Positions 17,391 through 41,756 of a DNA stretch of 64,000 nucleotides are shown piece after piece. The translations under genes were made by a program, and so were the position numbers. The stretch is taken from assembly GCA_030704615.1 (NCBI GenBank), contig CM060732.1, forward strand, positions 58,094,001-58,158,000, written 5' to 3'. The notes under the pieces were generated by a model, which searched no databases, was not told the DNA's origin, and worked only from the letters and a program-made list of their open reading frames with translations. How positions within the stretch are numbered: the stretch's first letter is position 1; each line of letters begins with the position of its first letter. The stretch comes from Takakia lepidozioides (lineage: Eukaryota > Plantae > Bryophyta).

Positions 17391-18367
17391 TGTAGTGTTT
17401 CTCCGTGTTTTCTCTAGACCTGTGACTGCTTCTTCTCCCTCACTCCCTGGGCCAAACCTGAGGTGAACACGCCAGATTACGATTGCGAGGTTGCTCCTCT
17501 CTTTTTATACCCTGCCTCAACCCGCAGAACCCAATTTGAGTTCGCCCCTAGCGGTTGCCTCTTCTGCCTGTGGCCTCTTCATGCTCGGCCTCCACCCATT
17601 TGGCGAAATTGGAGAATGCGAACGATTAACCCTGCGTCCTCTTTAAATAAGGCCTCCACCCACATGGACACGTTTGAGACGATCGACCCCGCTGCAAGTG
17701 AAAGCCTTTGTGTACTTTCTACGACACTCTCGTCAGTACAAGAATTGGATACCGTTCATCTCACCTCCGATCTAAAGGCTTGCCACGTAACTGGCAATTA
17801 CTAGATCATTGTCCATCCAAAAATTTCCTCCCCCACGATCGTGCTCCAAATATCCCACCCCAGTTAGGCAAGTCTATCTCTCTACAAATACCCCGTTGAA
17901 TCAATGTAAATTCTACACATCTGAGCAGAACTAAATAAACTCCCCACATTCACTCACTCTTTGCCAACCGGAAAGAGCATCGAGGGCATTCCACCTACCG
18001 ATCACAGCACTCGATCACAGTCCAGAAGCTCTTTCAGAACTCCTCAAGAGCTGCTAATTTCAGCACTGCCTGTGCGGAAATATATAGCAGCAAAGGGCGG
18101 GGCCCCACACAGCGGTGCACGGCAGCCATGGGACCCTCCAGCGGTAGCTAAGTAGCTCAAGTCGTCTCTCTCCTCCTGACATTCAGCCGGTTCCCCCTTC
18201 ACTCTTACCGGGCAGTGCCGGTAACAAACCGACTGCCAGTATCCTCGCTATGGATGAACGTTATTCACCTGATCTTTATATTTCTAACATCTACGAATGG
18301 CATCCAAAAAGTGGCCCGGCGAGGCTGTCGGTATGTGCGGCTCTAACCCACTGCTACCGGTCGCAAA

Positions 18368-18667
18368 GGCGCACATTAGAAAAGGCCCGGGAGTTTAATG
18401 CGACCCCTTCGATCCTGCCTGCGTGGCACACCCCGCCACCAGCCGCACCCCCTTCGCCGGCTCCTGCGCGGCTCGCGGTCGCTGCGCCCCGGCGCCCCCT
18501 CGCCCCCGCGCCACCCCGCCCCTCAGCCCCCCCCATCCCCCCCCCGCCCGCCCTCCCCGCCCCCGCCACCCCGCCCCGCCCCGCCCCCCGCCATCCGGCC
18601 GTCACCACACCACATGAACTCTGTGGCACATGACACCTGTCACCACAACCCAACATCGCGCGCGGGA
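18368..18667 (+). repeat. Left terminal inverted repeat of the MULE
   Basis: Reverse complement of 40197-40490. The ends are highly similar; the C-rich core differs in length. Confidence 0.95.
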
Positions 18668-19277
18668 TTAGCACATGACTCGGGTGGATCGGATGTAACA
18701 TGATCCATGTGTTGTAATCACCCATGATGATGGACAGCTTGACATGACAGGATGTGACACATACTCATATATGGCCGTAGGGAGATCGCGATGATCATGC
18801 TTTCGTGCTTTTTGCGTCCCGTTCGCACGCACATGGTGGACCTGTCGATTCGAATGCGGCCCCTCAGCTGTCACTCCCCACGTCGATGCTTGATTGATTT
18901 AATTCATGACAGCCACAGGACAGGTTTTCCAAGCTTCCTGGCGTTTGCATGGCCCGAAATGTATGATCCCGGCAGAAGCGGTGTTACAAGCACTTCCTTG
19001 AGGAGTATGCATCGCGGCTATTATAAACTGTTGACTGAGCTGTGGCGGTGAAGCGATTACTCATTCGACTTGAGTATAGGGTTTCTTTTTGGAGAATTTG
19101 GAAGTCATTCGTGTGATTTGCAGCTATTTTCTTCCTCTTGCTTGCCATTTCTGTCTGTTGCAGTCCATTTGCGTGCTTCATGTTTTAGTTTGAGTTCTTG
19201 CTTTCACATTCCAGCAACCTTTGCTCTGCTGGAGGATTCTTCAGGAGGAGGGTAGTGGATTTGGAGTGGGCGCCGAT

Positions 19278-22200
19278 ATGGTGAAACAATCCTCCATGTG
19301 CGAAGCGCGTCGGACGTACAATGAAACGTATGACTCTGATGAGTGGGAAAATCTCATATGCGAGGCTCACTCAGAGGCAAGGGTTGAGGAGCCCGGTGAT
19401 GATAATAGGAAGCCATTCAAGTGTATCCACTGTCTTAAGCAATATAAAGATAAGAAGAAACTTAACATTCACAGGATAAATGGCTGTGATGCTGCTGTAG
19501 GAAAGGGTGGGCCTAAACTGAAAATGTACCCTATTTTTTAAAAGAGGCAGAGGCACATCATGGAGGCTGTTCTTAGTAAGCACGGGATGAAGCCTCCTTC
19601 TTGCAAGTTGATGAAGACGAGGGTAGAATGCGAGGAGACGACGGCAGAAGAGACTACACGAAACCTAAGCGCAGGAAGCACACGAGTCTTCGGAAGGAGC
19701 CGGGAGTGGACCTTGATGATGATGATGACGATGACGATTTCTAGTTACAGGACGCACCACCTGCGCTGCCATAGCAGACTGTTAGACCTCAGCGCATTCG
19801 AAAGGACTCATTGGACGCACCTCTGCCATCACAGGAAAGTCTTCCATCAGAGCGCATTGTAAAGTCTACGTTTGTAGGACCTCATGCCGTGCCGCAGCAA
19901 AGTCTTCGACCCGAAGTGCACGTTGGAGTTGCATCTTCAGGTAGACAAGATGGCAGACCTCCAGTGCACATTCTGAAGTCCACACCCCATGCACCGCTAA
20001 GTAGAGAAGAGGCCAGGGAAGGCTTTGTCAAGGCGTCGTTGCTACTGACCTCGGATATTGTTGTGCCTCCCATACCCGCACCTGTTTCATGCCCAGGACT
20101 GACCTATCTGATGAAGTTCGACTTGTTGCCTGACGGATTTCCATCTCTGGACGAGCCTTCTTTTCTCAATCATCTTGTGGCTCTTATTGGGAAATTTGAG
20201 TTCGGGGACCAAATGATGGGCAACGCTTTTGGTCAATGGTGGCTTAAACGACGGGTAACACACCTTCTTCTTGGCCTGCACCTTCATGGTCACAACTCCT
20301 TCTTTGATTATGCATGTCTTTGCATTTTGTCTGCAGTTGCCTTTCAAGTTTAGGGTTTTTGGTTAGTCTTCCTCTATTACTGACCAGCTCCATGACTCTG
20401 CAATGGCGGGGGAGCAGTTTGATGCACCTCCAGAGGAGAAGACAGCTGTGGAAAATGTGGTGGACTTATTTGCCATACGTCCTGGAGTAACTCGTGACCA
20501 TCCCGCTCAGTTGGCGGAATGCTAACTGGTGATGGCACATCACAAGTATGCCATGGCATTGCTGGATTTCGAAATGAAAGGATTTGCAGCCCAGTCTGAG
20601 TTGGAGGCTCGTAGAAGGCAGTTTGTTGACGACAACACCCTCTGTACCAAATTGTTGCAGCAGGTGAGATCCCTGAGTTACCCCCCCCATATGTTCACAC
20701 ATTCTGAGGATGAATCTGATAGGTTGATGGTCATTCTTGAGGCTGCTCGCCACCACGCTCCACCTCCAAACATTCCGCTTTTCAGCAGGGTGTTCCGTCA
20801 GGTTTGGATGTCTCACGTTCACAACATGAAACCTATGTCAATTCCCCAATACTCCATCTTGTTAACTCTGCGAAATCATCTTCTCAACACAGAAGATGGC
20901 CAGTGTGCCATTACAAATGTGGGTGAGAATTTCCTGGAGATTGGATACTTCCTATACAGAGGCATGCCCCCATACGAGGAAGCCCAAACCCAGGTGTGTG
21001 AAGGACTTGCAGCCCTTCGGGGAGTGCAGAAAGAGGACTGCAAACACCTTTTTGAAGATCTGCATGGTTTCATGCGCGAGGTCCGATGCAGGGCTGTGCG
21101 TGACCTCGCCGTTCTGAATCCTATTGCCTTCAGAATATTGTGGTGTGGGAGTATACCAACTGATGGTGCAGGGGGCAAGAAAAAAGCCTTGAAGGACTTC
21201 AATGACATTTTGAGGCATTGGGAGGATGTCGAGATGGGCTGGCTTCCTTGTCCACCAGGTGTGTATTGCCCTTACCATGGTTCGTGCTACTGCATTTCAG
21301 TTCCTGGTGGTTCTTAACAATGTCCCTGGTGTTGTTCTCATTTCATTTCTTGTCACGGCCACATTTTCACAATGTCGATGTTGGTGTGCAGGCTGTCTTG
21401 ACTACAGGGAATCCAGCCTACATGACAAACTTGAGGCTGCTCAACAAATCCTCCATGAGGTCCACATTGAGAGGCTCCCAAGGGATGAGGCACGTTTCTG
21501 CATTGCCAAGTGTGGACATAAGGAGACGGTTGTCCCTGAACCGCAGTCAAGCACACTCGTTCACCTGAGTACAAAATACAAACATGGGGGCACTCATTTT
21601 GGCCGCTAACATGGCATGCAATTCCACACCTTCTGATGAGGCCAACAATGTCGTGGTAGAACATGTGTTGTCGGATCCTGTCTTCCCTCAGGCCCAAACG
21701 ATCCTGCCTGCTGAAGAAACTTGTGGCGACATACAGTGCCCACAACCAGGTCCCATGACTCAACTTGAAATGGAACTAAGCGCCACTCAAGTATTTCTTG
21801 GATTGTGTCAACCGCCTCCCCCTATGGCCTCTTTCACTTCAGAACAAACCCTCTGTGACATAACTGAGTTCCAAAGTCCACCACCCCTTAATATGCGATG
21901 TCCCACTGATGAGGGTGCTATTGTACATGCAGTAAGCACTGTCGGATCTTCCGTGACCCCAGCTAACTCAATGCTTAAACATGGGACAGAGCCTCCCACC
22001 CCCAATGCGATGGTTCTCGCACTGCCTTCGCCCATGCGACCTTACCACATCTTGTTTGATGGTGCTGATACACCTCACAGTACAGAGGCTACTACACGAT
22101 TTCCTGGTGATGTACATGGCAGCGTCCGGGCAATGAATAAAAATGCAACCACTGCCACCTTTGCCAAACCCAAGCCCATCCATACCATGGTTGCTGCCAA

Positions 22201-23686
22201 GGCAAAGGATGCGTTGCCCCAACCAGCACTTGCATTAAACCATGTCTAGGTATCCAGTGCCATTGTGGTTTTTTAAATGTTAACGGTCTCTCCTCTCTAG
22301 ATTGGAAATGGTGTATGTACGACGTTGCACATGCATTGACATATTGGGCTCCTGGATGTGCAGGATACATGAAGGCCTCGAAAACGTATTGTGAGTTGCG
22401 ACGCATGTGCACCCTTTTTCATGCATGATATGGTATACCTTCCATCCACAGTTTGCAAGTGGCCCGCATGTGCATAATTATGTGGGCGGATTTTCATAGC
22501 AATGAGATATGTGCCTTTTTTGCAGGCGGGCCAATGGTGCAGTGGTGGCAAAAACACATGACATATGGTTTTTGAAGGGCTCTCGGGTTTCGCAAGTTCC
22601 TCTTAGACTAGAAGATGCAGATGACTTGCTCTCTGCAAGGGGGTGGATTAGTGACCGTCTAATGGACTTCTGGGTGTCAGTTAAATTACTGTCTCTTCCT
22701 GAACATGTGTGCAATAAAATCCGTGTTGTAGATAGCTTCACATGGATATGCCTTCCTGATCATTGTGCAAAGCAGGCAAATCAAGTTGACTTTGTGCGGA
22801 TTTGGATGCAAAGACAGTTCCCCTTCTTCAGGATGAAGGTGTTGAAGCCCTTATTGTGCCAATTTTATGCAAGTGAGTACAATGTGTATGCATTTCTACC
22901 TTCTTGATGCCGTACCTTTGAAGAAGGCCGTGCTCCATTGCTACATGTGGACTAACCTGTTGTTTGTTGCCCCCCTGTGCAGTGACCATTGGAATCTAGT
23001 TATCTTGGAACCGTCTCGCTACCTTCACTTGAATAGCATAAGAAGTTTGCACAAGTACCATGCTTTCAAGCCATTGTTTGCTACTTTCTGGGCCATGGTC
23101 AGAGGAATCAGCCCTGAAAGCCCCCAGTGGAAGGATGCAACTGACCTCAAGTGGTGGTTCTGCCCACCTGTTCCACAACAGGCCAACACATGGCAGTGTG
23201 GTTTGTTTGTAGCTCATTACATTGAGCTGTACTTAGTGCAAACGTACTTGAATCCACAACCTGGTGGTGCAGGCCCGGTAAGAGGCAGCTGCTCGTGGTT
23301 TACATGATCATTTGCCGCCTATTTTAGTTGTGGACGTTCATGTGCTCGCGCAATGTGCTGAATCCATGTATCAGGTAGAATGAACATGAATATCCTTATG
23401 AAAATTGTATGAATTTCTAACAATGATCATTGTTTGTTCATTGTTTGCTTTTGCATTCTTTGTTCTTCTTTCTTTGCAGCTCACATCAGACTAGTTCCCT
23501 ACTGAGGCCGTGCACGATAAAAGGTATGAACTTCAAGACATTATTTTGCACGAGCTTGACGGTCACCCGAGCCTCCATATGCAGTGTCCAAACCCCCACA
23601 CAAAGTTGGAGATTGCAGCAGCCCTCTCCTCCCTGTGGCCACCACTCCAGCTCCCCTCACACGCAGACGGTGTAAACGAGCCTTGA
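19278..23686 (+). pseudogene. MULE cargo gene: N-terminal C2HC/C2H2-like zinc finger, unknown middle region and C-terminal Ulp1-like (peptidase C48) SUMO-protease domain; multi-exon, decayed
   Basis: KPFKCIHCLKQYKDKKKLNIHRINGC near 19410-19490. Ulp1 hallmarks: GWISDRLMDFW, VVDSFTW, SDHWNLVIL (His 22987), LNS (Asp>Asn), VPQQANTWQCGLFV (Cys 23197), and a last exon LTSD*FPTEAVHDKRYELQDII. Several in-frame stops and frameshifts. Confidence 0.8.
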
Positions 23687-24179
23687 AGAAAGTCGGCAAA
23701 GCGTTGTGACATTGGATACAATTGGCTACAGAAAGTATTATTTATTAATTGTCTACCTTTCTGCGTTGATTTTTGTGGTCTTTTGCTTCCCACAACTGTG
23801 TCTTATTCTTTTTACAGGCAGCACATTTTCGACCGTCAGTGCACGTTCTCTGCTTTGTTTTGCAAGTTCACTTCAGTCCCTCTTTCCTACCCCCAGTCAG
23901 CCCTTCTCTACATTGGGGTATGCTATTTCGGGGTGTCTCTTCCTTCTCTCTAATGTTTTCGATTCAAGGGCATGTTGTTCAACATGATGGCAGCCAATGG
24001 GATCCCCCACAATATTAACACGTTCACTTCACAGTGTCACATTACTGTTCCGTTTCCTTGCTTACATGTATTGTGCAGTGACATAATGCCCAATACTGAA
24101 GACTATGACTGTTTCAACAAGTATATGTTGAGAAGCACTGGTAACTGGGGTATTTCAAAGTAGCTCCCTACATGCAACA

Positions 24180-25490
24180 CATGCCTACATTGCATATACA
24201 AGCAAGCCAGGAACTGCATGTAAAGGAAATTGGTAACACATGCACATACCATTCCATGCAACAATCGTAAATGGGCACAATGCACACCCCAGTGCAATCA
24301 GTCTTCAAGTCAATCACATGAATGTTATCGTGCTGGTACCAGTGTGGCAATTGGTCTCTCAGCAATGATATTTAATATAACTCGTGCCAAGCACCTGTGC
24401 TCTACACGCCACGAGGTCCAGTGTGTTGCACAATGGTGAATCAACGAAGTGTACAGGGTTCTCTATGCGTGCCATTCGGATTTCCATAGTGATATATACA
24501 CAGAGGGCACCTGATATCAGGCTCGGAAATAAACTCCACAACAGCATGATGGTTGTCTATAATGCGCACCAACCGTGATTGCACCAACATACGAAATTCG
24601 GGACGTTGTGGTCCATACATTTCCATGTCTATGGCACAATGTTTGAACACATGGGCCTCTCCATCCCCCATCTCTCTTTGCCGTTGTCTTTCATTCAAAC
24701 ACATGAAAGGATTGAAAATGGTGATGTTTCCTCTCCTCGTATACCTGCTCTCCTCCATCTTCACCGAAGCCTGTGCACTTCTCTAGAACAATGGTGCCCG
24801 TCAACCAAAAAAAAAAAAACTGTTCAAATGTCCTTTCATACTTTGGCCCCAATTTGTACCCATCCCTATCTCCCAATGAATATACACTTCTTCTACTTCA
24901 TCCACTTATGTGTTCTGATTTCAGGGTGCACAAATGCAAGCCTGCCTTGCTAGCATCATGGGAGCTGCAAAATCATTCCTTCTGAATTTATAACTTCCCA
25001 TGTGACCTGTATGTAGAAGGGTAAGTGACACATAAGAAACGTCCCTTCCCTTCTGCTAATTGCTTTAGGCCAATTGAATGTAATCTTGAAGGTATCACCC
25101 CAGGTAAGGAAGATTACGAAAGCAAACAATATTATGCATAAATGCCTATTGGTTTCATATGCATTTAATTAAATCTCAGCAAGTTCTGTGTGAACATATG
25201 GATGACTGTGGGTTGAAGGGTGCCTTTACCAACTGTCAGGTACCCTTCATAATTGAATTTCACTTCACCCACAGCCCTCTTGAAGCTGGGGGACAAACAC
25301 ATGCAATCAGACCACACCATGCTTGCTTCAGCAGCATTTGTTCAAATCTTCAGCATGGAACATGCACATTTGCATGCATGCCCCTTATGCAATTTTGGTG
25401 CAAACGAGGCAGTACTGAACGACCAAGCAGTTCCTCTAGTTCAGCAATACTTATGAACTGCCCCACAAAATCCAGCCTCAGTTTTTGAAA
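24180..25490 (-). pseudogene. Frameshifted coding remnants of unknown function inside the MULE
   Basis: Overlapping minus-strand ORFs (24441-24764, 24359-24547, 24168-24365) join into a protein-like sequence. No recognisable domain. Confidence 0.3.
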
Positions 25491-25606
25491 GAGCAAACAC
25501 ATGCACTCAATTGGATCCCCACCTTAAGCCGCCGACCGTGTCTTCTATGAAGCATTGTCAATTACTTCTCAGATTTTGGCATGGACGATCCTGCCCCACC
25601 TACAAG

Positions 25607-26600
25607 CTAAGCTAAGAGGGCTGGACTGACTCTAAGAGCACCCAAGTCTGGCACCAGCTCATCCATGGCAAAAGTCTCATCGATGTCGGTTTTGTCGATC
25701 AAAAAAGCAGTAGTGGGAATGAGCCCCAACGACCAACTAACACTATGCTCTCCTCTCTCAACCCTATACTGCTTCTTTAGTCGCACTGTAAAGCTACCCT
25801 TCACCATCACGTTAGTTTTTATACCAGCGAGGGCTTCTTCAGGTCCACAATGGGGACCTTGGATAGGAACCCGGTCTCGTCTGCCTCCACAATGTTGAAG
25901 ATCTTCTGAGGACTCCGCATGTTCACCTCCAACCACAAGTACTCCCTAGAAATCCGAGCCTTCGTGGTTGTGTCCACATGAAATCCTTTTACCTGTGCAG
26001 CACATGCAATCACATTCCAAATACACAAAGGAACCCCCATAGTAACATATTGCATAGCATATAACTTTGGGGCATTCGGCTTGTACAAAAACACTATTCC
26101 TTCCAGACACACTGATTTCTCCATGCTGGAACCAAACAAAATGTTTGCAACGATAGTGCGTATCCCTGCCAATCGTGGCTGCAGCACATCCGAGATATCG
26201 CGGGGATCTTCAATGGCAACTTCAATAAGACTGCCATTCGTACCTGAATAGTATGCCATGACCTGAGTTCGTAATGAAAAGCAGCCCAAAGGAAGTTGGA
26301 AACCCCGGTACCAAAAACAAACGCCCTGAAATGTGTCTGCCTTTGCCCAAACTTAAGCACGAGTGTGCTTTTTCAGTTGTGACTTAAGCTGCGATTGAAC
26401 ATATGCTAGTTTAAATGCGGTCTGCCAGGACACCAACGACTAGAGCTACGAAACCGCCAACCCTGCTACACTGCCACCCTCGGCCCAGACCGATTGGGAA
26501 AGCATTCATCAACATTCCGAAAGCAAAATCTTCATGAGGACGCTTAACCAGCAAACGTCTCGAACGAGTGAGGTTCACCTCCACTGTATACTGCCTCCTT
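25607..26600 (-). pseudogene. Decayed MULE cargo gene; beta-rich, possibly OB-fold/ssDNA-binding-like
   Basis: ORFs 26094-26360, 25819-26289 and 25607-25936 join across frameshifts. The C-terminus ...VMVKGSFTVRLKK...SWSLGLIPTTAFLID is followed by the acidic segment KTDIDETFAMDE. Confidence 0.4.
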
Positions 26601-28636
26601 AAAAAACAATGAAGATATACATTACTGATTTTGGGAACTGAAGAAACTAAATATATGTCGCTTCCCATGTTTCACTGTTTTTTGGGGCTTTCAGGCAGAT
26701 GGTCACATAAGCAGCTGTTCCGAGTGCAAGAGTCGGAATATTATCGGATGGCGCGAAGGCTATAACCTATGCAGCCTTAAGAAAAGAAGAGGAGGAAAAT
26801 GCAACCTCACTTTCTCAAACATCACAGACATTCAATTCATGAAATGCACTCAATTCCGATTCTCACCGGCGGCAGCAACTGGATTCCGTTTCGCAACAAA
26901 GATCAACCTCATCGATTGCCGCTCCACATGAAGGCCAAGCAACCAAGCTCCATATGACACGTTTTCTCCACAATACTCGTGTAAACAGACATTGCATCAT
27001 CACAACAGGGACCGTAAGAAGATGAACTTGCAACTGAGCAGAGTACACAATGATCTGCAACGGTTCTGTGGACATACCAACGCCATTAGCCATAATACTG
27101 TCCAACTGAAACAGCCTCCACAGGTACAGTCAAGCACACCTTCCTCTTATGTGCCAAAACAACATGAGGTTTGAGGAAGAGACAGACGGATGATGATCTG
27201 CGGATGAAAGGCAACTGAGAAAAGAATGGATGGACAATCATGTGTAACCGTGCATGCACACATATTTCATCCGTCGATGGGATGAACAGCGGCAGAACAT
27301 GAGGGTTGAGGATGATAGTGTCGGATGATGGTTGGGGGATGAAAAGACAACTAACAGAAGAATGGATGAAACTTCATGTGTCCATGCGGACGTTACAGAC
27401 TTCATCGTTCCATGGGATGCACATTGGCGATCCAAATGGGGCATTTGAGGAAACAGTTGTTCCCGTATCTACCTTCATTGGAGTCTTTCTTTTACAGAAT
27501 TCAGGACTTATGCCTCCAGACCTGAGGTCACAGTGTCACACGATTATATCCACGGTCTGTACCATTTTCTGAACCATGGTTCTCACAGTTATGTTCTCAA
27601 TGGTGATTTGTTATGCTTCGATTTCGCAGCAGGTCCTGTTGCTGGTAAAATATGTAAATTGTAACCTGGCATGGACATTCTATTCCGTGACACACAAGCC
27701 AACCCAACCCCATGCAAACTAAGATTGTCGAAGTCTTCGCCACTCCCTCTCACATGCAAAATAAGAGACTACAGATGTGAATTGAGTAACACTACAACAT
27801 GTTATGGACACAAAACCTCAATGCATCTGGTATTTTAGGGTTCCTGTTCATACTGCCACTTGCATTCATATTGGGCCATGTACAATGTTGCAAATTCATT
27901 CCGTATGGGTTACTGATATCGTGTTGGAATGGTAGCGTTATACTGTAAATCTGACACGTTGTTACACATGAATTGCACAAGAGCAGGACAAGCTGAAATC
28001 TGAAAAACCTATGTGCATCTTCAAGTTGGTTGTTTTCTTCGAACTGTGACGAGCATTCACATTAGCGCTTCTAGAATGTTGAGCACAAGAAGAACAATGT
28101 ATTCATTGTGTATGTGTACATAACAACATTTTACAAAGCTAGGTTCATTCTCCAGCGACAAAGACTTTACTTAACCTCAATTGAATAAGAGGAGAAGAAG
28201 TGAAGCTGATAAATCCGACAAGGGGATGACTACACAGAACGGATGGATGACAAACGGATGCAAATGCCATGTGTAACGGTGCAGCCGTTACACAGTGCAA
28301 CCCTCGATGGGATATACATAGGTGCTTTTTCTGCTGGTGGGGAGTTCACGTTCGTCCCACCGAGAGCTTGTGGAAGAGCAGGTTGAAAAATTGAATATAA
28401 GCACAGGGTCATTCTGTGTTTCATGTGATTCATCGTTGTTTTTCTTCACATCATCTCTTTCAAGAGGGAGTATCAGGAAGTTATGTTGTTATCTTAGGGT
28501 TACCCAAGTCGTCTCCTGTATACATTGTTTTCCTGGTGTTCTTCTAAGAAAGTCATAGCTCTTTGGAGTCATCTTCTCCACACACTATAGTTTTTACATA
28601 TTCCGAGGAGACTACTCTATCAAGTTGAGGGTTGCA

Positions 28637-29115
28637 ATGGGATTTGGGGCGGGTGTAGCTTTCAGGCTCCGCAAGATTTATGCAAGATTTGAAGAATTGC
28701 CAGCCCACATACCCATGAGGTCATCTTGCGCCTTCTTGAAAAGGTGCAAATGGAAGAGGGGTAGGACAAAGTGTGGGTTTACAAAATCCAGGGAGGAGTC
28801 AGGACAATGACAATCCACATGGGCGACCTGAAGTGTTCCTACACAATGGATGAAGAGGAGCAAGGAGCTGTGGTTTTGTGCCATGTGCTGTTAGGTTTCA
28901 TGGACAGGCTTGTGTTGAAGACCTGGCACCACAAAAGCAGCCGCTATGAAGGGGAGGGTGTTGTGGATTGGGGGTACCATGTAGATATGGGAGAGGGATG
29001 GGTACAAGAGTTTCTGGAACTCATCCCAGAAAGTAAGAGGGGCATAATAGTCGTAGACCCCTCTAAGGGGTTTTTGGAGGATGAGGTCCGCAGCTATGCA
29101 AGACTGAATGGTTAG
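28637..29115 (+). pseudogene. Orphan cargo ORF with one apparent frameshift
   Basis: MGFGAGVAFRLRKIYARF... continues into VYKIQGGVRTMTIHMGDLKC...FLEDEVRSYARLNG*. Protein-like composition, family unknown. Confidence 0.35.
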
Positions 29116-29299
29116 AGATTGTAAGACTCTCCTGTTTTCATTGAAGACCTGGTACTGGCTGAATTCATTGCACCAGACTCTCGCTTTGTGCCTCCCTATT
29201 TTGGGGTTTGTACATGAAAGTCGGCTTCAGACATATAGTACATGCATGTTGTAACAATTACTTCTCTCAGAGTTGGTATGAGTTGAAGACTCTTGGTTC

Positions 29300-31530
29300 A
29301 GGCTTTCCTTCATTCCTCTAGAAAGTCCTTCACACATGCATGAATTTGCTGAGTGTGACCCGCCCAGCAATCATACCCCAACATGATCAGGGCTTTAGGC
29401 TCGGCCTCCAGAAAGTTTGTGAAAGTGGGTGAAAGTTGGTGAACAGAGGTGCAGGGAGAGACTATGTTTGATATGGTACTGAATACTCTCAGACGTTGCT
29501 TGCCATAGCGTTGTGGCCATAGACCCCGCATCCATTCTTGGGCAGAAGAAGAGGCGATAGACCTACCTTCATGAGGGGTTCAGTCCAGTTGTGGGACTTA
29601 TGTTGGTATACAAAATTGGTTCAGGAGATTGTTGCAGCTTTCTCATTCCTCTAGAAAGTCCTTCATACATGTATGAACCTGCTGGGGGTGACCTGCAGCT
29701 AACCAAGTTTTGCCCAGCCCCCTTCCAACGGACCGGCCAGACTACACTAGATGATGTGAGACTATATGTTGTCCCACCAGTACTGTTAACACCACCAGAT
29801 CTGCCCTACACTAGCACCTGCATTAACACACGTACCAAATTCATGGTAATTTCCCCCCTCCACACTCCCTATCTCTTGCCTTACACCAGCTTAACACACC
29901 CTACTATCTGTACTACATACATGCCTCAGAGCTGCTATGTTACCCAGTACATTAAGGTCTTCTTTGACACCCATAAACCCATACTACCCTCTCATATAGA
30001 GGACCCTCTTGCTCATCTTCAATCTGCAATCTGCCCTCCCTGTTCCCTAGCTTCTACGCCACTAACTACTGGTACTACAGCCCCCTCTCCCTGCAGCTTA
30101 CAACATCCTTGAACGCTGCTGCCCACACATTTAACCACCCACCCAGGTTCCACAACACCTCTAGCTCATGTATCTCTACTCTCCTTCTCACTCTCTCTCT
30201 CTCTACTAACAACCTGTTTCAACCAATGGTCATGTGGTAGCTAAATTGGTTGCATGGCCCTCTTACCTGGGGCAAGCCCATGATCCCCTCCCAATGCTGT
30301 ATCGCTGCCCCCACAGCTCCCACTGCTTCACACCCACACAGACACCATATCATTTGCCACCCCCCCCCTCTTGGAAATTTGGGCTGCTCCATCCATTCTC
30401 GCATCCATTCATGGGCAGAAGAAGAGGCGATAGACCTACCTTCGTGCGGGGTTCAGTCCAATAGTGGGACTTATGTTGGTATACAAAATTGGTTCAGGAG
30501 ATTGTTGAACCTTTGCTTCGTTCCTCTAGAAAGTCCTTCACACATGCATCAACTTGTTGAGGGTGACCTGCCCAGCAATGATACCCCCACATGGCCAGGG
30601 TTTTAGACTCAGGAAGGATCGCAGTTTCTTAAACCTCTTGAAAGTTGGTGAACAGAGGTGTAGGGAGCAGCTATGTTCGACATGGTCCTGAGTACTCATG
30701 ACACGTTCTTTGCCATAGCGTTGTGGCCATAGACCCCGCATCCATTCCTGGGCAGAAGAAGAGGCGATAGACCTACCTTCGTGAGGGGTTCAGTCCAGTA
30801 GTGAGACTTATGTTGGTATACAAAAATTGGTTGAGGAGATTGTTGAAACTTTGCTTCATTCCTGTAGAAAGTCCTTCACACATGCATCAACCTGCTAAGG
30901 GTGACCTGCCCAGCAATCAGACCCCCACATGGCCAGGGTTTTAGACTCACCCTGGATCGCAGTTTCTTAAACCTCTTGAAAGTTGATGAACAGAGCTGCA
31001 GGGAGAGACTATGTTCGACATTGTTCAGGCTTTCCTTCATTCCTCTAGAAAGTCCTTCACACATGCATGAATCTGCTGAGTATGACCTGCCCAGCAATCA
31101 AACCCCAACATGGCCAGGGCTTTAGGCTCAGCCTCGACAAAGTTTGTGAAAGTGGTTGAAAGTTGGTGAACAGAGGCGCAGATAGAGACTATGTTCTTGC
31201 TAGTCCTGAGTACTCACGAGACGTTGTTTGCCATAGCGTCGTGGCCATAGACCCCGTATCCATGGTTGGGCAGCAGAAGAGGCGATAGACCTACATTTGT
31301 GAGGGGTTAATCCAGTACTGAGACTTATGTTGGTATATAAAATTGGTTTAGGAAATTGTTCAGGCTTTCCAGATTTCCTGCAGAAATCCCTCCGCACAAG
31401 CATCCATCTGCTGTATACCCCAAGAGGAGCAGGGCTTTAGGCCGAGCCTCCTGATTTTCAATGTTGGTGAACAGAGGTGTCAGGAGTATGGTCCTGAAGA
31501 TGGTTGCTCACTGATGAGAAAACCCCAACA
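29300..31530 (-). repeat. Head-to-tail array of ~335-bp LINE family B 3' ends, interrupted by a C-rich insert at ~29700-30400
   Basis: TTCCT(C/G)TAGAAAGTCCTTCA recurs at ~29313, 29646, 30521, 30859 and 31040, with a variant at ~31374. CCATAGCGT(T/C)GTGGCCATAGACCCC recurs at 29503, 30713 and 31231. Confidence 0.85.
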
Positions 31531-31593
31531 CTGAGTGATTCCAACAACTCCCAGCATGTGTCATTCACTATTGTCAAGTTATTTTACCACTAG

Positions 31594-32730
31594 TGTGAAA
31601 CTAGCTAGGAAATAGCTAGCTTTTACATATTGACATTTGGGATTGGCCCAAGTGTCAATCCAGGGGTCAAGGCAGATTTAGGCCCTGGAGTGGTTATCTT
31701 CACGGCAAGCGCGGGAGGCTCATCTTTCTCGAGTTGAGCCTCACCGCGCCTAGCTATGGCGCCGTAGTGTGGATTCCCCATGGCGTGGGGTGCATTTGGC
31801 TTGACTTGTATTTGAGTGATGAGGTTATATATGCATGAGTTTAGGCTTCAGCTTTGTGAGCTTGCATGGGCTTGTGCTTGTATTCTTCTTCTTTATCACT
31901 CGAGAAAGATGAGCTCATATCTGTGAGTGCTAGATACGAGTTAGTTGTAGCACTTGTGGTTTTTGCTTGAGAATGAGAGAAACCAGGTTGTTATGCAAGG
32001 AGCACCATGGAGCTCTTGGTTGTTAGAAGCGAAGGCAATGTGGGTTATGAGGTGGTAGACCTTGGCATTCGATCTTCAGCTTCAGAGATGAAAGCACCAT
32101 GCTGCAGGATTGCAAGACCAAGCGAAAGGGCTGATTTGGCTTGGGGCAAATCAGTGCACTTTGTGGAGTATGTTGAGATTGGTTTTCAATCTCGAGCTTC
32201 AGCATTGAGAGGGCTCTTGTCATGGCAAGAGCAGGGCTAGAACATGAACTAAGAGGTGTGGCAAGGCCATGGAATGTGCACCTAGGGTTTCAGAGCTTGG
32301 AAGAAGAGCTCTTGCACCACAAGAGGAGTGTCTTGTGGCTAGAAATGTAAGCATTAGGGTTTCAGGAGCTTGGTAAGGGCTGTGGAGTGCTTAGTCTTGT
32401 CTTAGAGAGCATCAAGGAGCTAAGGAGCCAAGATAGGGGGCTGATACCTCTTGTGTGAAGAGGTTGCATGTGTGGAGCATGTATTCAGCTCATTGAAGCT
32501 TCCATCTTCAAGCTTGGAGGGCAAGCAAGGAAGAGGGAAGGGCTGACTTCCTTTATGTGAGAGCAATGCATGTGTGGAGCATGCTTTCAGCCTGTTGAAG
32601 GCTTGTACTTTCAGGTTTGGGAGTGCAAGAAAGGAAGGAAGGGGCTGGTTTCCCTGTAGGACATGTGTAGAGCATGCTTCCAGCCCGCTGAAGCGTGTAT
32701 TTTCAGGTTGGTGGGTGCAAGAAAGAAAGC
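31594..32730. mobile_element. Possible LTR-retrotransposon-like non-coding fragment nested in the MULE
   Basis: Begins TGTGAAAC, contains TATATA at ~31826 and internal short repeats. No TSD or partner end could be confirmed. Confidence 0.25.
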
Positions 32731-32734
32731 AAAG

Positions 32735-33605
32735 GGGCTGTGACAGGCTGTGCCCAGTGGCCTGTGGGGCTGTGACGGGCTATGAGGGGCTGTGACAGGC
32801 TGTGCCATGTGGCTTGTGGGGCTGTGATGGGCTGTGATAGGCTGTGGCGAGCTGTGAGGGGCTGTGAGGGGTTGTGATGGGCTATGAGGGGCTGTGACAT
32901 ACTGTGGCCTGTGGCCTGTGGGGCTGTGACGGGCTGTGACAGGCTATGCCCTGTGGCCTGTGGGGCTGTGACAGGGTGTGAGGGGCTGTGACAGGCTGTG
33001 TCGTGTGGCCTGTGGGGCTGTGACGGGCTGTGGCGGGCTGTGGCGAGCTGTGATGGGCTGTGACAGGCTATGCCCAGTGGCCTGTGATGGGCTGTGACAG
33101 GCTGTGGCGAGCTGTGACGGGATGTGAGGGGCTGTGACAGGCTGTGCCTAGTGGCATGTGGGGCTGTGACGGGCTGTGAGGGGCTGTGACAGGCTGTGCC
33201 CTGTGGCCTGTGGGGCTGTGATGGGCTGTGAGGGGCTGTGGCCTTTGGGGCTGTGACCCCTGTGACATGTGTAGGGCTGTGACAGGCTGTGCCATGTGGC
33301 CTGTGGGGCTGTGACGGGCTGTGAGGGGCTGTGGCCTTTGGGGCTGTGCCCCTATGACTTGTGTAGGGCTGTGACAAGCTGTGCCATGTGGCCTGTGGGG
33401 CTGTGACGGGTTGTGAGGGGCAGTGACAGGCTGTGCCCTGTGGCCTGTGGGGCTGTGACGGGCTATGAGGGGCTGTGACAGGCTATGGCGGGATGTGACA
33501 GGCTGTGCCCTGTGGCCTATAGGGCTGTGAGGGGCTGTGACAGGCTGTGACATGTGGCCTTTGGGGTTGTGATGGTTGTGGCCTGTGTGGGGCTGTGACG
33601 GCTTT
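32735..33605. repeat. Minisatellite of ~10-bp GGGCTGTGAC(A/G)/GGCCTGTG units
   Basis: Dozens of GGCTGTGA units. Explains the HSPSQP/QPVTAP repetitive ORFs. Confidence 0.95.
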
Positions 33606-34511
33606 GACCAGTGATGTATATGGGCCTGTGCTGGTCTATGGTGGCCCGTGGACGGCCTGTGCTGACTCGTGGAGGCACTGGTGGACTACCTAAGGACTGA
33701 CATGTGGTCTTGAAGGCCGAATTTTGAAGCTCGTGGAGGACGGTTTGAGGAGTATCTTCATGATATCCTTGGGTCATCACGGGCCTACACAGGCCTTAAG
33801 GTGTGGCAGTCACAGGCCCACACAGGCCTTAAAGCACGGCAGTCGCAGGCCCTCACATAGGCCTCAAGGCACGACAGACATAGGCTTGCACGGGTTACAG
33901 TAGCACAGGCTACCATAGGTACATGGTACGATGTTGTAACCCTCATAACTTTTACGGTCACAGCTCCACACAGGTCCACAGAGGTTACATGATACTATTA
34001 CCACATGAGGGGAACGAGAACGTCACCAACTTAGGGAACGGCATTACAGTTCGTATTGTCATAACTGACGGTTAGAGTAGTAACTATTAGTTAGACGGTT
34101 AGGAGCTTGCGGGTAGAAAAGGTAGAATAGCTACGAAGGGAGCACCACTTCTTAGGGACATGGACTTGGAGCACATGCAAGAGATTACGTGGAGGAGGAG
34201 AGAAACGATGGAGTATAGCTTGATACGTGCAAGCTATAGCTATGAGGGGGTTGCTATTCCATGAGCTCATGAGCTCATGAGCGGGCATGGCTCACCCATG
34301 AGCCGCAAAGTAACACACTTCGAATTTCGGCAGATTTTTTTCGGGCCCAAAACTATAAAATAATCGAAAGTAGTATAATAAGAGAAGGTTTTCGAAGATT
34401 TCCGCGCTCATGCTGGAAACACTCCGCTCATAAGTACCAGTGTCCGCTCATGACTTGGAGCCCAGGCTCATGGACTGCCAGGCCAGGTCATAGAAAAACT
34501 GAATTCTGGGC

Positions 34512-34990
34512 AATAACGGCACCGAAATTATCCTAGAGGCAGAGACGCAAGCGGAATTAGGATCCGGGTTTGCAGACTCCGGAAACGCAATGGCGACCTA
34601 TAACCGTGGATAGTACAGTTGCAGAAGTGCAGGAAGGTTGGGTATAACGGCGCCGTAATTGGGCACAGGAAAGAAATAGCCGGCTGAAGGCTCGGGAGTG
34701 AAGCCAATAACGGTGCCGAAATTGGGCTCCGCCAACCAAATACCTGGCTGAAGCCTCCGGAGTGCAGCCAATAACGGTGCCGAAATTGGCCCCGGAAACC
34801 AAATACTCGGCTGAAGCCACCGGAGTGCAGCTGATAACGGCGCCGAAATAGGGGTCCGGAAACCAAATACCCGGCTGAAGGCTGGGCAGTGCAACCAATA
34901 ACGGCACCGAAATTGGGCTCCGGAAACAAAATTCTCGGCTGAAGCTTCCGCAGTCCATCCAATAACGGCGCCGAAATTGGGCTCCGGAGA
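34512..34990. repeat. Tandem ~64-bp repeat with conserved core AATAACGGYRCCGAAAT and CGGCTGAAG
   Basis: Core at 34512, 34643, 34706, 34770, 34833, 34897 and 34961 (period 63-64 bp from 34643 onward). A solitary variant copy lies at 36191. Confidence 0.92.
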
Positions 34991-35221
34991 GCAATTACCC
35001 GCCTTACGGTGAGGGAGTTTTGCAAACTCTCCTGAAACTGGTGCGGATTTGTCTAATAAAAGCACACATGTCAGAGGAAATAGAAGTTTTGCCGCATACA
35101 ATATTGGCAGTGCAGCAATGATATATCCCTCTTCCGCCGGCCTCGCTCTCATTTTGCTCTTCACTCTTCTCTGTTGTGCCCATCTCCTCTCTGCTCTGAG
35201 TTCTTGCTGTGTCGTGAGGCC

Positions 35222-35773
35222 ATGTCGTGCCCGAATCACATCTATCGATGCGAGATGGGAGTCATTGTCCCGAAAGCAGACGACATCATTATCTTCCTAG
35301 ATGTTTACAAGGACAATCCTCGTCTTGTCCAGCTGAGAGCAATGGAGTTTCTTCCAGGATTGCACGATTCTCCTGGACCCCGGCTGGGGAGCAGGTGGTT
35401 CCTACGCATCATGGACCTGGACTTTCCGCTTGAGCGGGAGCCGAACAGATCACGCACAGCGTTGCTGTATCGCTGGAATTGTTGCGAGTGGACGTATGAT
35501 GAGTGCATAGGTGAAAACTTCACGCGTGGACGGACTGGCTCGGAAAGTGGGGACATTCTCTTCAGTTATGAGGATGAGGAGGAGGGGAACACAGGGCCCA
35601 CTGTGAAAATGTCCTTCTACCAAGGGGGCGCTATCGATAAACACGACATCCTCGTTAGTTTCAACCGGGCGACAGAAACCGCTTACATTTTGTTCAGATA
35701 TCGGCACCTAGTCATTCAGGAGGTCCTTGAGAGGCCAGTTCGAGTTCCTTCTTCTTGGGCGAGGGGACCATAG
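35222..35773 (+). CDS. Intronless 183-aa orphan protein inside the MULE (MSCPNHIYRCEMG...SSWARGP)
   Basis: Uninterrupted ATG-to-TAG ORF with globular, beta-rich-looking composition. TATA-like GATATAT at ~35120 and a pyrimidine-rich leader upstream. Confidence 0.55.
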   Translation: MSCPNHIYRCEMGVIVPKADDIIIFLDVYKDNPRLVQLRAMEFLPGLHDSPGPRLGSRWFLRIMDLDFPLEREPNRSRTALLYRWNCCEWTYDECIGENFTRGRTGSESGDILFSYEDEEEGNTGPTVKMSFYQGGAIDKHDILVSFNRATETAYILFRYRHLVIQEVLERPVRVPSSWARGP

Positions 35774-36457
35774 GTCTTGCATGCTAGAGTAGACATGTTT
35801 CGACTCGCCGACACTCATGGCACATACATTTTGATTCAGAAATCAAGTAGCTTCCCTGTGCCATATGGGGAATATACATGCTTGGATAATCTTCTGTTAA
35901 GGTTTTTTGCAATTCACTGCTAGTATGCTGGGACGTGTCATTTGTCATATGGATTGCTGTTTGCATAAGGTGCAGTATGCAAATGCTGGAATGTGCAGTA
36001 GGACCCTTCCCATTGGGACACAGAACTAGTAATCTTGTAAAGGCATCACATTTGCATAACACTGTCAACGTATTGGTAGCAAATTGGAGTCTTCTCATAA
36101 AGGTGGACGAAAACGCCAGGATGAGCTGCGAAATCACCACAAAATTGAATGAAGAGCAGTAACAAGGAAGCACTATGCAGTATACAGACCAATAACGGCA
36201 CTGAAATAGGCCTCAATGCCCGTGTATCTCCACACAATGTATGCTTTACTCGGATCCATTTATAGACAACCAAAATAAAAAAAGTATGCGCATGCCATTT
36301 ACGGCCAAAAACCACATTCTCATGTATTGCGGCACTGAAATGCACCTGGAGCCATGGCGGTGCGGCACCACCAAGTGTATAATTCCTCACAAAAAAATAG
36401 GGTGCAAGAAGATGAATGTAATATAATTGCCACTTTCTCCTTCCCGAATGTGGAATG

Positions 36458-37362
36458 TCAAGCAGTCCGATCTGTATCCTGCCGTAGGGCCTTGTGTAGC
36501 TCGTTGAAACTCAGTGTTAGAGCATGGATGAAGACGTCCACTGCGGATATGCAACTCATGCGCTTCAGAAAAATGTAATAAAGGTGTTTCCAGGGGACGT
36601 ATGCTGCATTCTTCGATTCCATAACAAGGAAGTCCTCACAGTTGCAAGCTGGGTACTGAGAAACCGTGATTGCATACACGACACTGCGCGCAGCAGACCC
36701 GGCTGTTGATAACTGAAATATGCGCCCCATCCCGGGGTGAGGAACATCCCTCCAAGCTTGCACTATGCAGGGCAAGGCAAGAGCGTTGGCCATCCTGGTG
36801 TTGTTCGCCTTTGTTGGTAGCCGCCGTCTTTTCAGTTTCCCCCACCGATGGGTGGGTCAAGCTGCGGGGTCACCCACCGGTATGCGGGGTGAAGAGCTTC
36901 TTGTGGGAGGAGGATGACGACTGGGAATTGGATTACGTGGAACGTCTGTCCTCTCCACCAGTCGAAACCCTGCACTTCCTAGAGTGTCTATGTCGCGGCC
37001 CTTTGCCTTGAGGGCAGGGGGTCGGGACACATGAGGGGCTGCCCCTGTGGTGGGGGCAGCAGCAGCGATAGGTATGGGGGGCTGAAGCACCTTTGAGTGC
37101 CCAAGGCACTCAGGGAAGCGGAGGCGCTCACTAGGTGGAGCCCCGCACACCGGGTTGCGGTGGGGGTGGCTCCACAAGGGGTGGTGGTAGCTTAGCGGGA
37201 CTTAGTGGGGGTGGCATAGGACTCACCATGGGGGCGGAGACCTCGTGGTGGGAGTCGTGGGGAGTCTTGGGACTCATCACGGTCCATAGGGGCCGTGGTG
37301 AGTGGGCCAAGACTCATGCGACTCATCACCGGGAGTCGAGGGTTTTTGTGGTGGTTCGCCAT
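36458..37362 (-). pseudogene. Second SWIM-zinc-finger gene in the MULE (low-complexity N-terminus plus SWIM), decayed
   Basis: TATATATA at 37409-37416 and ATG at 37362 (MANHHKNPRLP). YAITVSQYPACNCEDF...VPWKHLYYIF is a SWIM CxC...CxH motif with the third Cys changed to Trp. Internal stops. Confidence 0.65.
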
Positions 37363-37526
37363 AAAATGGCATGGCTGGTTGTGAAACCCCCGCGGACAGC
37401 TACAGAAGTATATATAGGGAGTAGTAACCTCGAGAACGGTGCAAGCCCGTCGGTGACCAAAAACTAGTGAGTAAGTGAGCGAGCCGGAAAGCGACCAAAG
37501 AGTGGGGAGCTGTTCCGGACTGCCAA

Positions 37527-39811
37527 CTACCAAAGGGAATCTGGTGTGCGCACATATTTCCTTTCTGGACCCAATTCACAACATGCCCATTTAGAATCCG
37601 GATTGTGGATAGTATATGTCATACCCAAATGGCGGTGGCATTGAACTGTTGCAATGCCTCCGGGTGTATGAGGCAGATGCACATTGGTATTTGGAATGTC
37701 CTTGGCAAGCAAGATTGAAGTGCAAACAAATCCCTCCTGCCGTTTGTTTCGGATGAACCCATATGCTTTTGCATGTGACATGTACTAGTAATATCAGTTC
37801 AGAGATGAGCCAATCCACCCGCCTACTACCGAGGACGTTTTTGGTGCTCTTCAATTGCGCTTTCAGGTTCCTGTGGTATGTTTCTATGGCAGCATTAGTG
37901 TCTTGAGAGGCATGAGGTATATTGCGGGATCCCTTCATCCACATTTTGGCTTTTGGAAGCCACTATGTCTCCATGTAGGTGCAGAATTCTGTCTCAGAAG
38001 GGTACTTCTCCCGCAGGTCCAGAATTTTGAATACGACCCATGCTTCACCTGCATCCCCAGAGGTCTCCTTTCTATCGTACATGATCTGTGCCAGATCTTG
38101 TAAGATAGCCGCTCGCAATACTGGGTCTTTCACCTTTGCAACTGCATTCTTCTGCCAGGCTCGGCGAACATGCCACAAGCACAAGAAAACAACACAATCC
38201 CCCCAAACAGAATCTGTTCTCTTATCAGGTAGGTAAACTGAAATTCATGTATAACCAAGAGATCATGGTAGGCATATTTCCTGAGTTCATGGACGTACCT
38301 AATGGCAACAATTTCAGCATCAGCGTCATCCACAATAAATGCATTGGGACGCCAGTCTACTTGCCGACTTGTCATTTGTTTGTTTAGTGCCTCCATCCAA
38401 GGCGTCAGATCGATGGTTTTGCACCTTGCAGTGATAATGTACTGGAATACCATTCAGCTAGTCGTCAAATACCATCATGGTATATAACGGGTACTGCAAC
38501 AACAATCATGTGTAACTAAAGTGACTTGAAAGGAAATGGTTGCAAAACAGAGTACTTCACATGAAGAACGTAATTTGCCATGCTTTCAAGAAATTCGGGT
38601 TAACAATCTGGCGAACCTTCTTTTCATTCATTCCAAAGGTTGCATCACAAGCAACTATGCGACGATGGCCGTGTTTGAGCATCTGTTTTCTCTGCCAATC
38701 AGTTTGTATGCCAAGCACAAATGGAAGGTCAAGTTTTCTGTCATTCAACGTCCAAGCAGGGTGATTAGACTCTTCCTGGTAGTAGAAAACGCTTCCTGGG
38801 TTTTCATGCACCCACATTCGGACACTTTGTGCATCATTGGAGTGCTTTTTGAATGTTTCTTCATCGCACTTGTTGGCAATATTTCGGATGTCATTTGAAA
38901 GAAGGAAGATGTCATGAGTAACCTCGAACCCCCCATCCATGATTTCCCTCACCCTCTGCGTGTGCTTGGCCATTATATTGTTGATGCTTAGTCCGAGACG
39001 GAGGTTGTGTAACACCCATGATTTCATCTCATCGCTCAGGTGGGGAGCTAATGAAACGCGACCTACTTGATGCCCAGGTCCATGGCAGACCTGTCCAGCC
39101 CCATTCACATGTCTCTTTTCATAATAGACCGGCTCTGCAATATCAGGGTCCACTTAGCCTTGCTTCACTACAAACCTGCACATGCATCCCCTCTTGATGT
39201 CTTCCCCCGATTTTGTTTGTGTGGTCCTCATTTGTTTTGGCTTTTGCTTCAGTGGAAGCGGCTGTGGCTCTTGGCTTCCTCCCCTTCTTCTTTGCAGGCT
39301 TCACTCGGCGTTTCTTGTGTGCCATTGCAGGGGTAACCTCCAAGAGGGAACTAGTTCTGTCTTGTGGACCATATGAGCAGTGATACCTACAATAACAAAA
39401 AAACAATCCGTTACTATGACACCAAGGGGATTCAGGCACTCGGACATTCATGGAAACCATTCGATAGCCCTTGCAACACATGACCTGCAGCCCAATGTAT
39501 CTTGTTGTAGTCCTGACACTGTTGCTGCAAGGAGCTAAAAGAGACCCCTCCGGATGGCATCTTTGCTGATGCCTGCTGAAAGTGCATGGGCCATCTGAAC
39601 GGGAAGACTCCCCTGTAATGAAATCAGCAACTCGATTCCAGGGAATGTAGGCGACTTCAGCAGAGTTTTGGCCAGGAGGCTTGCCATGCCATTGGAAATG
39701 CCACTGCAGTACATGATGGTTGAAAGGACCTACACTGGGCATTTGAACTTGGTTTCGAAGCAGCAAAACAAGATGGGATGCAATGTTTTCTTCATTCTCG
39801 GCAACAGACAT
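37527..39811 (-). pseudogene. MULE-type DDE transposase, similar to the angiosperm SWIM-domain family At4g13970/At1g60560; decayed and 3'-truncated within the SWIM finger
   Basis: AYIPWNRVADFITGES, YHCSYGPQD, KRGCMCRF, HVNGAGQVCHG, FVLGIQTDWQ, ACDATFG (D1), FIVDD (D2), CLWHVRRAW (CxxH), TNAAIETYH (E), RRVDWLI, HNPDSKWACC. Stops at ~39155, ~38459 and ~37964, plus frameshifts. Confidence 0.88.
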
Positions 39812-40196
39812 ATCGTGGCACAATTCAGGGACCTAAGGCACGGTTGGTACTGGCTGCACATTGTGCTTTCGTGGTCAGAACAGTTTGAGAGGACCATAAA
39901 AGGAAGGTGACGATTGGAGGTTGCCTCTCATTACACATACTTCCTGGTCTCATCCATCCGTACCTACATACCTCCATCCTAAATCCTAGAAGTAGACCCA
40001 ATCCATAAAATAATACTAAATTTGAAATTTGAAATTTGAAATTTAAACATGTACAACCTTGTGTATACATGCATATGTGAGGGCTTCACGCCTATGGTCA
40101 TCATGTGACTTTCGTGATGGTCATCATGTTACTTTCGTGACCATCATGTATGTGTCATCTGCCATGTATGGATCCATGTTTTCGTCTCACGACGTG

Positions 40197-40490
40197 TCCC
40201 GCGCGCGATGTTGGGTTGTGGTGACAGGTGTCATGTGCCACAGAGTTCATGTGGTGTGGTGACGGCCGGCGGACGGGGGGCGGGGCGGGGAGGGCGGGCG
40301 GGCAGGGGGATGGGGGGCGCCGGGAGGGGGGGGAGGGGTGGGGTGGCGCGGGGGCGAGGGGGTGCCGGGGCACAGCGATCGCGAGCCGCGCAGGAACCGG
40401 TGAAGGGGGTGTGGCTGGGGTGGCGGGGGTGCCATGCAGGAAGGACCGAAGGGGTCGCATTAAACTCCCGGGCCTTTTCTAATGTGCGCT
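40197..40490 (-). repeat. Right terminal inverted repeat of the MULE
   Basis: Reverse complement of 18368-18667, immediately followed by the TSD copy GGTCGTAAA. Confidence 0.95.
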
Positions 40491-41048
40491 GGTCGTAAAA
40501 AGCCAGTCACCTGCAATGCCAGGTTACAGTCAGCCCACGCGGTATTTCCAGTCAACTCATTAGCTGGTAGTCGCACTGGAGACTGCCGGTGGATCTGACA
40601 ATGATACGGAGCAGCGGGACTCTCAGCCAATATTGCTGGCCCGGCCCGGTATTCACCTGGGGCCGGCCACTAGAACACCCGTTACCGCACCCGACCCTTG
40701 AGTGCGCCCCTCATTATTTTACGTATTATGTCCACGCGGAATCATCCTGTAAGTCAGAATAAAATATCAACGGCCGGGACATAGAATCGGTAAAATATTA
40801 CAATCCTCGATCTAGACAATTTCGAGGACAGTGCGGTAGCTTGCCGACACGTGGGGTCCAAGAAAGACTCGGATGACATCCACCTTTTGGACGAATGAGG
40901 GAATTAAGGATCAGTACACGTACTAAGTACAAGTATAAATACGTAAGTATATATAAAATTAGTGTACTCGTAAATACATACTCATACTTGTCCTGTATGG
41001 GTTCTACCGGCGCCCCACCAGAGAGGGTGCAAGAAAAATAAAAATAAA

Positions 41049-41099
41049 GGTGGGGGGAGTGACTGAGCAGCAGCAACTGCTCAGTCACTCCCCCCCACC
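41049..41099. repeat. Near-perfect GC-rich palindrome/hairpin
   Basis: GGTGGGGGGAGTGACTGAGCAG-CAGCAA-CTGCTCAGTCACTCCCCCCCACC: 19-bp perfect inner stem, with A-rich and T-rich flanks. Confidence 0.85.
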
Positions 41100-41218
41100 A
41101 TTTTTGTTTTTGTTTGCTCGTCTCGGGTTTCTGTGGAACAATATTTTTGTCATTAATTGTCGTATACATGTCGTCCCCTTGTTATTGTGGGAGGTTTGCG
41201 ATATTCAACTACCACATA

Positions 41219-41321
41219 CCGTCCCTTATCAACCGTTTAGGAGATAATTAATTCAAAATGAAAGTGCCTAACGCGTTTTGGGAATTTTTTCAAAATTTGG
41301 CCTAATTGCAGGGAAACCAAT

Positions 41322-41353
<32 letters not shown>

Positions 41354-41684: not shown

Positions 41685-41756
41685 TATGGGAGTTTTGTCT
41701 CACCCCTTCAAAAAGTGAGAGGAAAGAGCAAAACTAAACCTCTTTCAAAGTAATAG

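Follow-up and report, generated by a model that had tools for sequence, protein, structure and literature searches.

The question raised by this locus is how much of the DNA between the ends of a large Mutator-like element (MULE) in the moss Takakia lepidozioides belonged to the element as a working system. The element was read as one copy, within a 64-kb window (64,000 nucleotides of contig CM060732.1, assembly GCA_030704615.1, positions 58,094,001 to 58,158,000; all coordinates below are those of this window). An initial annotation had suggested that it may belong to an undescribed lineage of large cargo-carrying MULEs with a dedicated set of accessory, possibly anti-silencing, genes. The first part of that description is supported by the element ends, by transposase motifs and by a convergent gene with an Ulp1 protease domain. 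Both main genes are broken, with several stops and frameshifts each. Taken together, the data suggest that this is probably a copy, now dead, of a MULE that once moved autonomously by cut and paste, with a two-gene core, comprising the transposase and a convergent helper, and a variable load between them.

The element is bounded by terminal inverted repeats (TIRs) of ~300 bp, as annotated. The left TIR (18369-18667, plus strand) is CpG-rich, and 268 of 291 aligned bases (92%) are identical between it and the right TIR (40197-40489, minus strand), with a mismatch at the outermost base. The divergence of ~8% indicates that the insertion is not fresh. Directly outside the TIRs lie the two copies of a 9-bp target-site duplication (TSD), GGTCGCAAA at 18359-18367 and GGTCGTAAA at 40491-40499. 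These match at 8 of 9 positions and differ by the one C>T change already noted; at a fixed site, eight or more matches out of 9 would arise by chance with a probability of 1e-4. TIRs of 300 bp and a TSD of 9 bp are as found in the Mutator superfamily, for which the TSD range is 8-11 bp (PMC6446971). On the left, the open reading frame (ORF) of an AAA-ATPase on the minus strand has its start at 17390. Its distance from the TSD is 969 bp, in agreement with the ~1 kb given previously; the URB1/Npa1 gene lies to the right. Both flanks are CpG-rich, with observed/expected (o/e) ratios of 0.87-1.0 at 17500-18358 and 40500-41000, so the element seems to have inserted into a promoter region between these two genes.

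A broken transposase gene reads inward from the right TIR on the minus strand (36458-39800, start tentative). It was identified as the annotated DDE transposase by its motifs, which were read by eye in the order D (~38646), D (~38330), CxxH (38181) and E (~37885). A first SWIM motif at 37583 is frame-broken and is followed by a Pro-rich linker, and in a second, at 36646, Trp replaces the third Cys. The gene is interrupted by four or more stops and by several frameshifts. Pfam searches with the separate broken pieces gave no MULE or SWIM match, so assignment to the family rests on the motifs and the end structure. The motif set around D-D-E, CxxH and SWIM is presumably like that of At1g60560 and At4g13970, an unaligned resemblance that serves as a lead only; these are angiosperm host SWIM genes without TIRs. 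The annotation of a separate second SWIM gene was not upheld. The only clear extra SWIM, that at 36646, closes a Pro-rich frame of ~240 codons on the transposase strand with a single stop, and it is most simply read as the transposase tail.

Gene A, the putative helper, converges on the transposase from the left TIR (19278-23686, plus strand, 3′ end tentative). From an ATG at 19278 it encodes a C2HC finger (19278-19538, pattern C-x2-C-x12-H-x4-C), a middle domain, a helical domain (20388-21258), a low-complexity linker and an Ulp1/C48 protease domain (~22526-23280), with introns beginning at 20255 and 21259. The protease domain was matched by PF02902 (E 1.9e-9, at 22867-23304), and the gene also gave a weak C2H2 match, which bears out the zinc-finger-Ulp1 gene predicted at this end. 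Among the residues with roles in C48 proteases (His, Asp, Gln and Cys), it retains the His, Gln and Cys. Gene A contains at least four in-frame stops and one frameshift: three of the stops and the frameshift fall in exon 1, and one stop falls in exon 2, at 20523. A codon bias nevertheless persists (z 2.8). The Ulp1 piece had no match in metagenomes.

The finger and helical parts of gene A have a counterpart among moss host genes. In homology searches, for which gene models were compared exon by exon, the helical piece matched uncharacterised proteins, with a best E value of 1.5e-21 (Ceratodon protein P0001); the named matches were from Ceratodon purpureus and Physcomitrium patens. A profile search found 27 relatives, every named one from these two species, and a word-index search with the helical piece was blank. 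Identity between gene A and the moss host proteins is 52-53% over the finger and 25-31% over the helical domain; the host copies show 58-88% identity with the Ceratodon protein. Both introns of the finger/helical region occur at the same codon and in the same phase in gene A and in the host genes. These shared intron positions, together with the same domains, indicate that gene A and the conserved host gene derive from a common genomic ancestor. Compared with the host proteins, gene A fuses an Ulp1 domain to a moss-specific finger/helical protein.

The host gene itself has a conserved setting. In Ceratodon (M758_5G026400 / KC19_5G024800) and in one metagenome contig it lies between cullin and PEPC genes; in another metagenome contig it adjoins PEPC, and in Physcomitrium, where homologues include LOC112293720, it adjoins a weak cullin match. 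Its product has a long disordered tail and no Ulp1. None of the 13 host-type loci compared contained similarity to Ulp1, the transposase or the orphan ORFs B, C and D of the element interior. The host protein belongs to no Pfam family, and its Atlas features gave zinc-finger leads only, all below 0.82. A full-length predicted model (pLDDT 45) had no PDB match, and a domain model (pLDDT 73) gave a best TM of 0.24 by query (Atlas) and a best Z of 5.6 (PDB), values that are not meaningful for helices, and no known fold was recognised.

The relationship between gene A and the host gene is ancient, since identity is confined to 25-53% and gene A is fused to Ulp1. A match of cargo to host genes had been named beforehand as evidence for random capture. 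Such a match does exist for the finger/helical part, at this low identity and within a fusion. A recent Pack-MULE was rejected: a transposase is present, and the host match occurs at the protein level alone, with no blastn match to the compared moss loci, a set that leaves out Takakia's own host genes. The direction of transfer is not given by the trees, which do not place the element copy; its branch is more than ten times longer than those of the host copies. Takakia is sister to all other mosses, so equal distance to the host copies would be expected under capture or domestication. A second, divergent host-like paralogue, P0004 (L003:8888-11798), found in one sample, is equally distant, at ~28% identity to the main group, with the same two introns; no transposon features were seen within 10 kb of it. 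We consider the following history unlikely: a bryophyte Mutator lineage evolved a sequence-specific self-protection protein of its own, unrelated to VANC and composed of a C2HC finger, a new helical fold and Ulp1, and its finger/helical part was recruited, early in the history of mosses, as a conserved host regulator. In that case a transposon helper gene, and not a transposase, would have been domesticated, and the Physcomitrium copies would provide a direct handle on the mechanism.

The finger module also occurs in tandem, in two to four copies, in three metagenome contigs (L011:10001-11938, L012:67-891 and L013:1528-2400), which we take to be from peat-moss samples. This tandem-finger gene has a different C-terminus, with neither the helical domain nor Ulp1. 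On the first of these contigs, a 17-bp word with a TGTAACATG core recurs 26 times within L011:200-6330, scattered over both strands; this stretch stops 3.6 kb upstream of the finger gene.

Known MULE systems offer partial parallels. That MULEs carry Ulp1 genes, frequently in the opposite orientation to the transposase, is established (PMC2528002), and VANC proteins with an Ulp1 domain have an anti-silencing function (PMC13317346). What is new here is that the finger/helical part of gene A is homologous to a conserved moss host gene. The likeness to KAONASHI (KIU) elements and to the Ulp1 MULEs of Arabidopsis, grape, melon and rice lies in the Ulp1/C48 gene opposite the transposase (PMC2528002), with PF02902 on the plus strand and the transposase on the minus strand. 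KAONASHI elements, however, are non-TIR and have Ulp1 joined to a VANC protein (PMC13317346), whereas the moss element has 300-bp TIRs and its Ulp1 belongs to a moss-specific finger/helical protein that lacks a VANC domain. The VANDAL elements of Arabidopsis are likewise large multi-gene MULEs with an accessory gene, and their non-coding DNA also holds short words and tandem repeats. They differ in their degenerate TIRs (PMC10398659) and in the DUF1985/DUF287 domains of VANC proteins (PMC5735166), neither of which is found in the moss element: Pfam gave no DUF1985 or DUF287 match in gene A pieces or in the full-length host homologues, and no VANC homology was found in gene A. Membership of the VANDAL or KAONASHI groups was therefore rejected on the long, well-matched TIRs and the lack of VANC domains, though the layout is alike. 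With maize MuDR the element shares long TIRs, a 9-bp TSD and two genes convergent from the ends, but it is ~4 times longer, its second gene is unrelated to mudrB and its transposase has two SWIM motifs. The moss host gene, for its part, shares with gene A the order of its three domains (finger, middle, helical) and both introns, and differs in its disordered tail, the absence of Ulp1 and of transposon features, and the fixed cullin-gene-PEPC neighbourhood. No literature on this moss MULE lineage or on its host counterpart was found in a search that left most subscription journals and Repbase outside.

How might such a core have worked? In an active ancestor, the transposase would have bound the TIRs and inserted the element with a 9-bp duplication. 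The C2HC finger would have directed the helper to the element's DNA, most likely to a CACATG/ACATGA-type word concentrated beside both TIRs. At these sites its Ulp1 domain would have taken SUMO off chromatin or off silencing proteins, so that the element stayed expressed. We put forward this anti-silencing step, in which the finger targets element DNA and Ulp1 removes SUMO locally, tentatively and as a little short of an even chance. It is drawn by analogy with the Ulp1-carrying VANC proteins (PMC13317346; PMC5735166), for which binding and demethylation have been shown. The role of the Ulp1 domain, repeatedly acquired by transposons, has been stated as unknown (PMC13317346). The 12 kb between the core genes, with its orphan ORFs, dispersed-repeat cluster and arrays, would be variable load rather than a fixed toolkit.

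The candidate word is enriched in the element. CACATG occurs 66 times, against 25±5 in dinucleotide shuffles (2.6-fold), and with the arrays removed 49 times against 21±5, with no excess in the flanks. Its density reaches 11-12 per kb beside both TIRs. The shorter word ACATG occurs at ~1 per kb in exons 1-2 of gene A and at 6-23 per kb in most non-coding parts, and is rare in ORF D. The array words, in contrast, stay local to their arrays, and the word of the 10-bp array described below was rejected as an element-wide word, as it showed no excess outside that array. For comparison, the end of a neighbouring element (1-1221) is saturated with a GGGTTACA-type word, and GGTTACA occurs 44 times in the first 2 kb of the window; the core of the GGGTTACA-type word is similar to TGTGAC, the core of the 10-bp array. 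The CACATG signal falls far short of the saturation seen at this neighbouring end (1-965).

Several observations weigh against the proposed core and its helper function. The enrichment of CACATG is modest (2.4-2.6-fold), and CpG decay of a CACGTG-like word, of which none is left in the element, could yield such an excess. ACATG is also dense (8-13 per kb) in exon 3 of gene A and in the Ulp1 exons. The Ulp1 domain has Asn where Asp is usual. The family of the transposase is judged from motifs and element ends, with no profile match, and only one copy was read.

Between the two core genes, the initial annotation had listed four to five further ORFs or remnants. Three candidates stand, none with a homologue. 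Orphan ORF B (25610-26668, minus strand) is broken: its ~350 codons are spread over three frames and include 2 stops. It has a CpG-rich 5′ end and codon bias in two pieces (z 1.8 and 2.0), and no homologue was found by word-index search or in Atlas features, NCBIfam, PHROGs, PDB or viral contigs. Orphan ORF C (28640-29115, plus strand) is weakly supported, with ~155 codons and one frameshift, and had no homologue in NCBIfam, PHROGs or PDB. Orphan ORF D (35222-35773, plus strand) is intact from ATG to stop over 183 codons and has a CpG-rich 5′ end; it had no homologue in Pfam or in the compared moss loci. Codon bias gives weak support for B and is silent on C and D, in a test that is itself weak, as known transposase pieces score z −0.8 to 1.8. 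Paralogy among ORFs B, C, D and the transposase was rejected on comparison. An exact look-up of ten window proteins and an Rfam scan were blank. A Cys/His-rich remnant region lies at 23700-25600, in which a SWIM-like CxC..CxH pattern at 24246 (minus strand) had no Pfam support. A Harbinger-type Myb remnant considered at 26932-27171 was dropped, also for want of Pfam support. Between ORFs B and C, a short GGATG-rich unit is duplicated (27161-27423 and 28230-28320, 74% alike).

The two tandem motif arrays described previously are present. The first, a 10-bp array of ~80 units with higher-order periods of 42/52/92 (32733-33580), follows a 102-bp tandem of ~3 copies, the whole tract (32461-33580) being CpG-depleted. 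The second, a 64-bp array of 5.6 copies (34644-35001), lies directly upstream of ORF D; each unit holds an 18-bp near-palindromic core, and CpG is preserved (o/e 1.0). A third array, absent from the initial annotation, is a CpG-depleted cluster of about six repeat units of 330-520 bp at 29296-31527, and this repeat also occurs singly outside the element (7135-7234, 11111-11476, 14804-14873 and 47406-47741). The dispersed form, of 330-365 bp, has a shared 5′ boundary and is apparently intronic in host DNA and tandem in the element; it had no match in Rfam or in the compared moss loci. Across the element, CpG o/e is 0.7-1.0 at the TIRs, at 26.0-27.0 kb (ORF B 5′ end) and at 34.0-35.5 kb (64-bp array and ORF D 5′ end), and 0.14-0.43 over 28.5-33.9 kb. 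The peaks would be consistent with promoters, and the CpG-poor block could stem from an old insertion. A search inside the element for nested pairs of TIRs, TSDs or LTRs (long terminal repeats) found none, and an intact nested TIR or LTR element was rejected.

These interior features bear on the possibility that ORFs B, C and D and the arrays formed a conserved accessory set, acting with gene A in sequence-specific anti-silencing. The CpG-rich 5′ ends of B and D, which resemble the TIR promoters, the codon bias of B, and the intact state of D behind a palindromic array with preserved CpG would all fit a fixed set, as would the lack of a nested pair. Against this, B and C had no homologue in any library tried, nor D in Pfam or the compared loci, and the 28.5-33.9 kb block differs in CpG profile and holds a repeat dispersed in host DNA. 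A fixed multi-gene element is thus rather unlikely. The dedicated accessory set proposed at the outset is supported for the left gene, with no such support for the orphan ORFs.

Two further explanations concern gene A itself. It could be passive freight that is decaying and has no role for the element; the host finger/helical gene and an Ulp1 fragment would then have been captured long ago, in the manner of a Pack-MULE. DNA-level capture would give a host homologue with the same introns, and the broken state and long branch of the element copy are in keeping with it. Yet all three host domains are present in order, fused with Ulp1 and reading inward from the TIR; the finger (52%) is far better conserved than the helical part (~29%), which points to past selection, and gene A keeps its codon bias. 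We regard passive freight as quite unlikely. Alternatively, the helper could have served transposition, in a mudrB-like role or by removing SUMO from the transposase, with the words and arrays as by-products. MuDR has the same convergent two-gene layout (PMC6446971 for the role of mudrB), the motif enrichment is weak in the copy read, and transposase binding could also explain a word beside the TIRs. A DNA-binding-type finger and a word beside both TIRs suggest instead that element DNA was targeted, and a role confined to transposition seems very improbable. A two-gene core with variable load remains the preferred reading.

The copy read is dead and its orphan load unproven. What is known of the anti-silencing proteins of transposons comes mainly from flowering plants. 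A moss lineage in which Ulp1 is paired with a different DNA-binding protein would allow an independent test. Through its link to a conserved moss gene with homologues in Physcomitrium, the question of helper function becomes workable.

Other features were seen elsewhere in the window. Its host genes include DYW-PPR, aldehyde dehydrogenase and URB1 genes, and a DYW deaminase domain remnant lies between host genes (6642-7100, minus strand, Pfam E 1.8e-23). In the right flank of the element, a 35-bp hairpin with a 6-nt loop (41036-41111) is followed by a 474-bp element (41215-41688) resembling a miniature inverted-repeat transposable element. The inverted ends of the latter match perfectly over 27 bp, and a second copy of its interior, 83% alike, lies at 43278-43502. 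A second dispersed repeat family (71-77% alike) occurs in or near the URB1 gene, at 46763-47115, 58592-59018 and 60148-60602.

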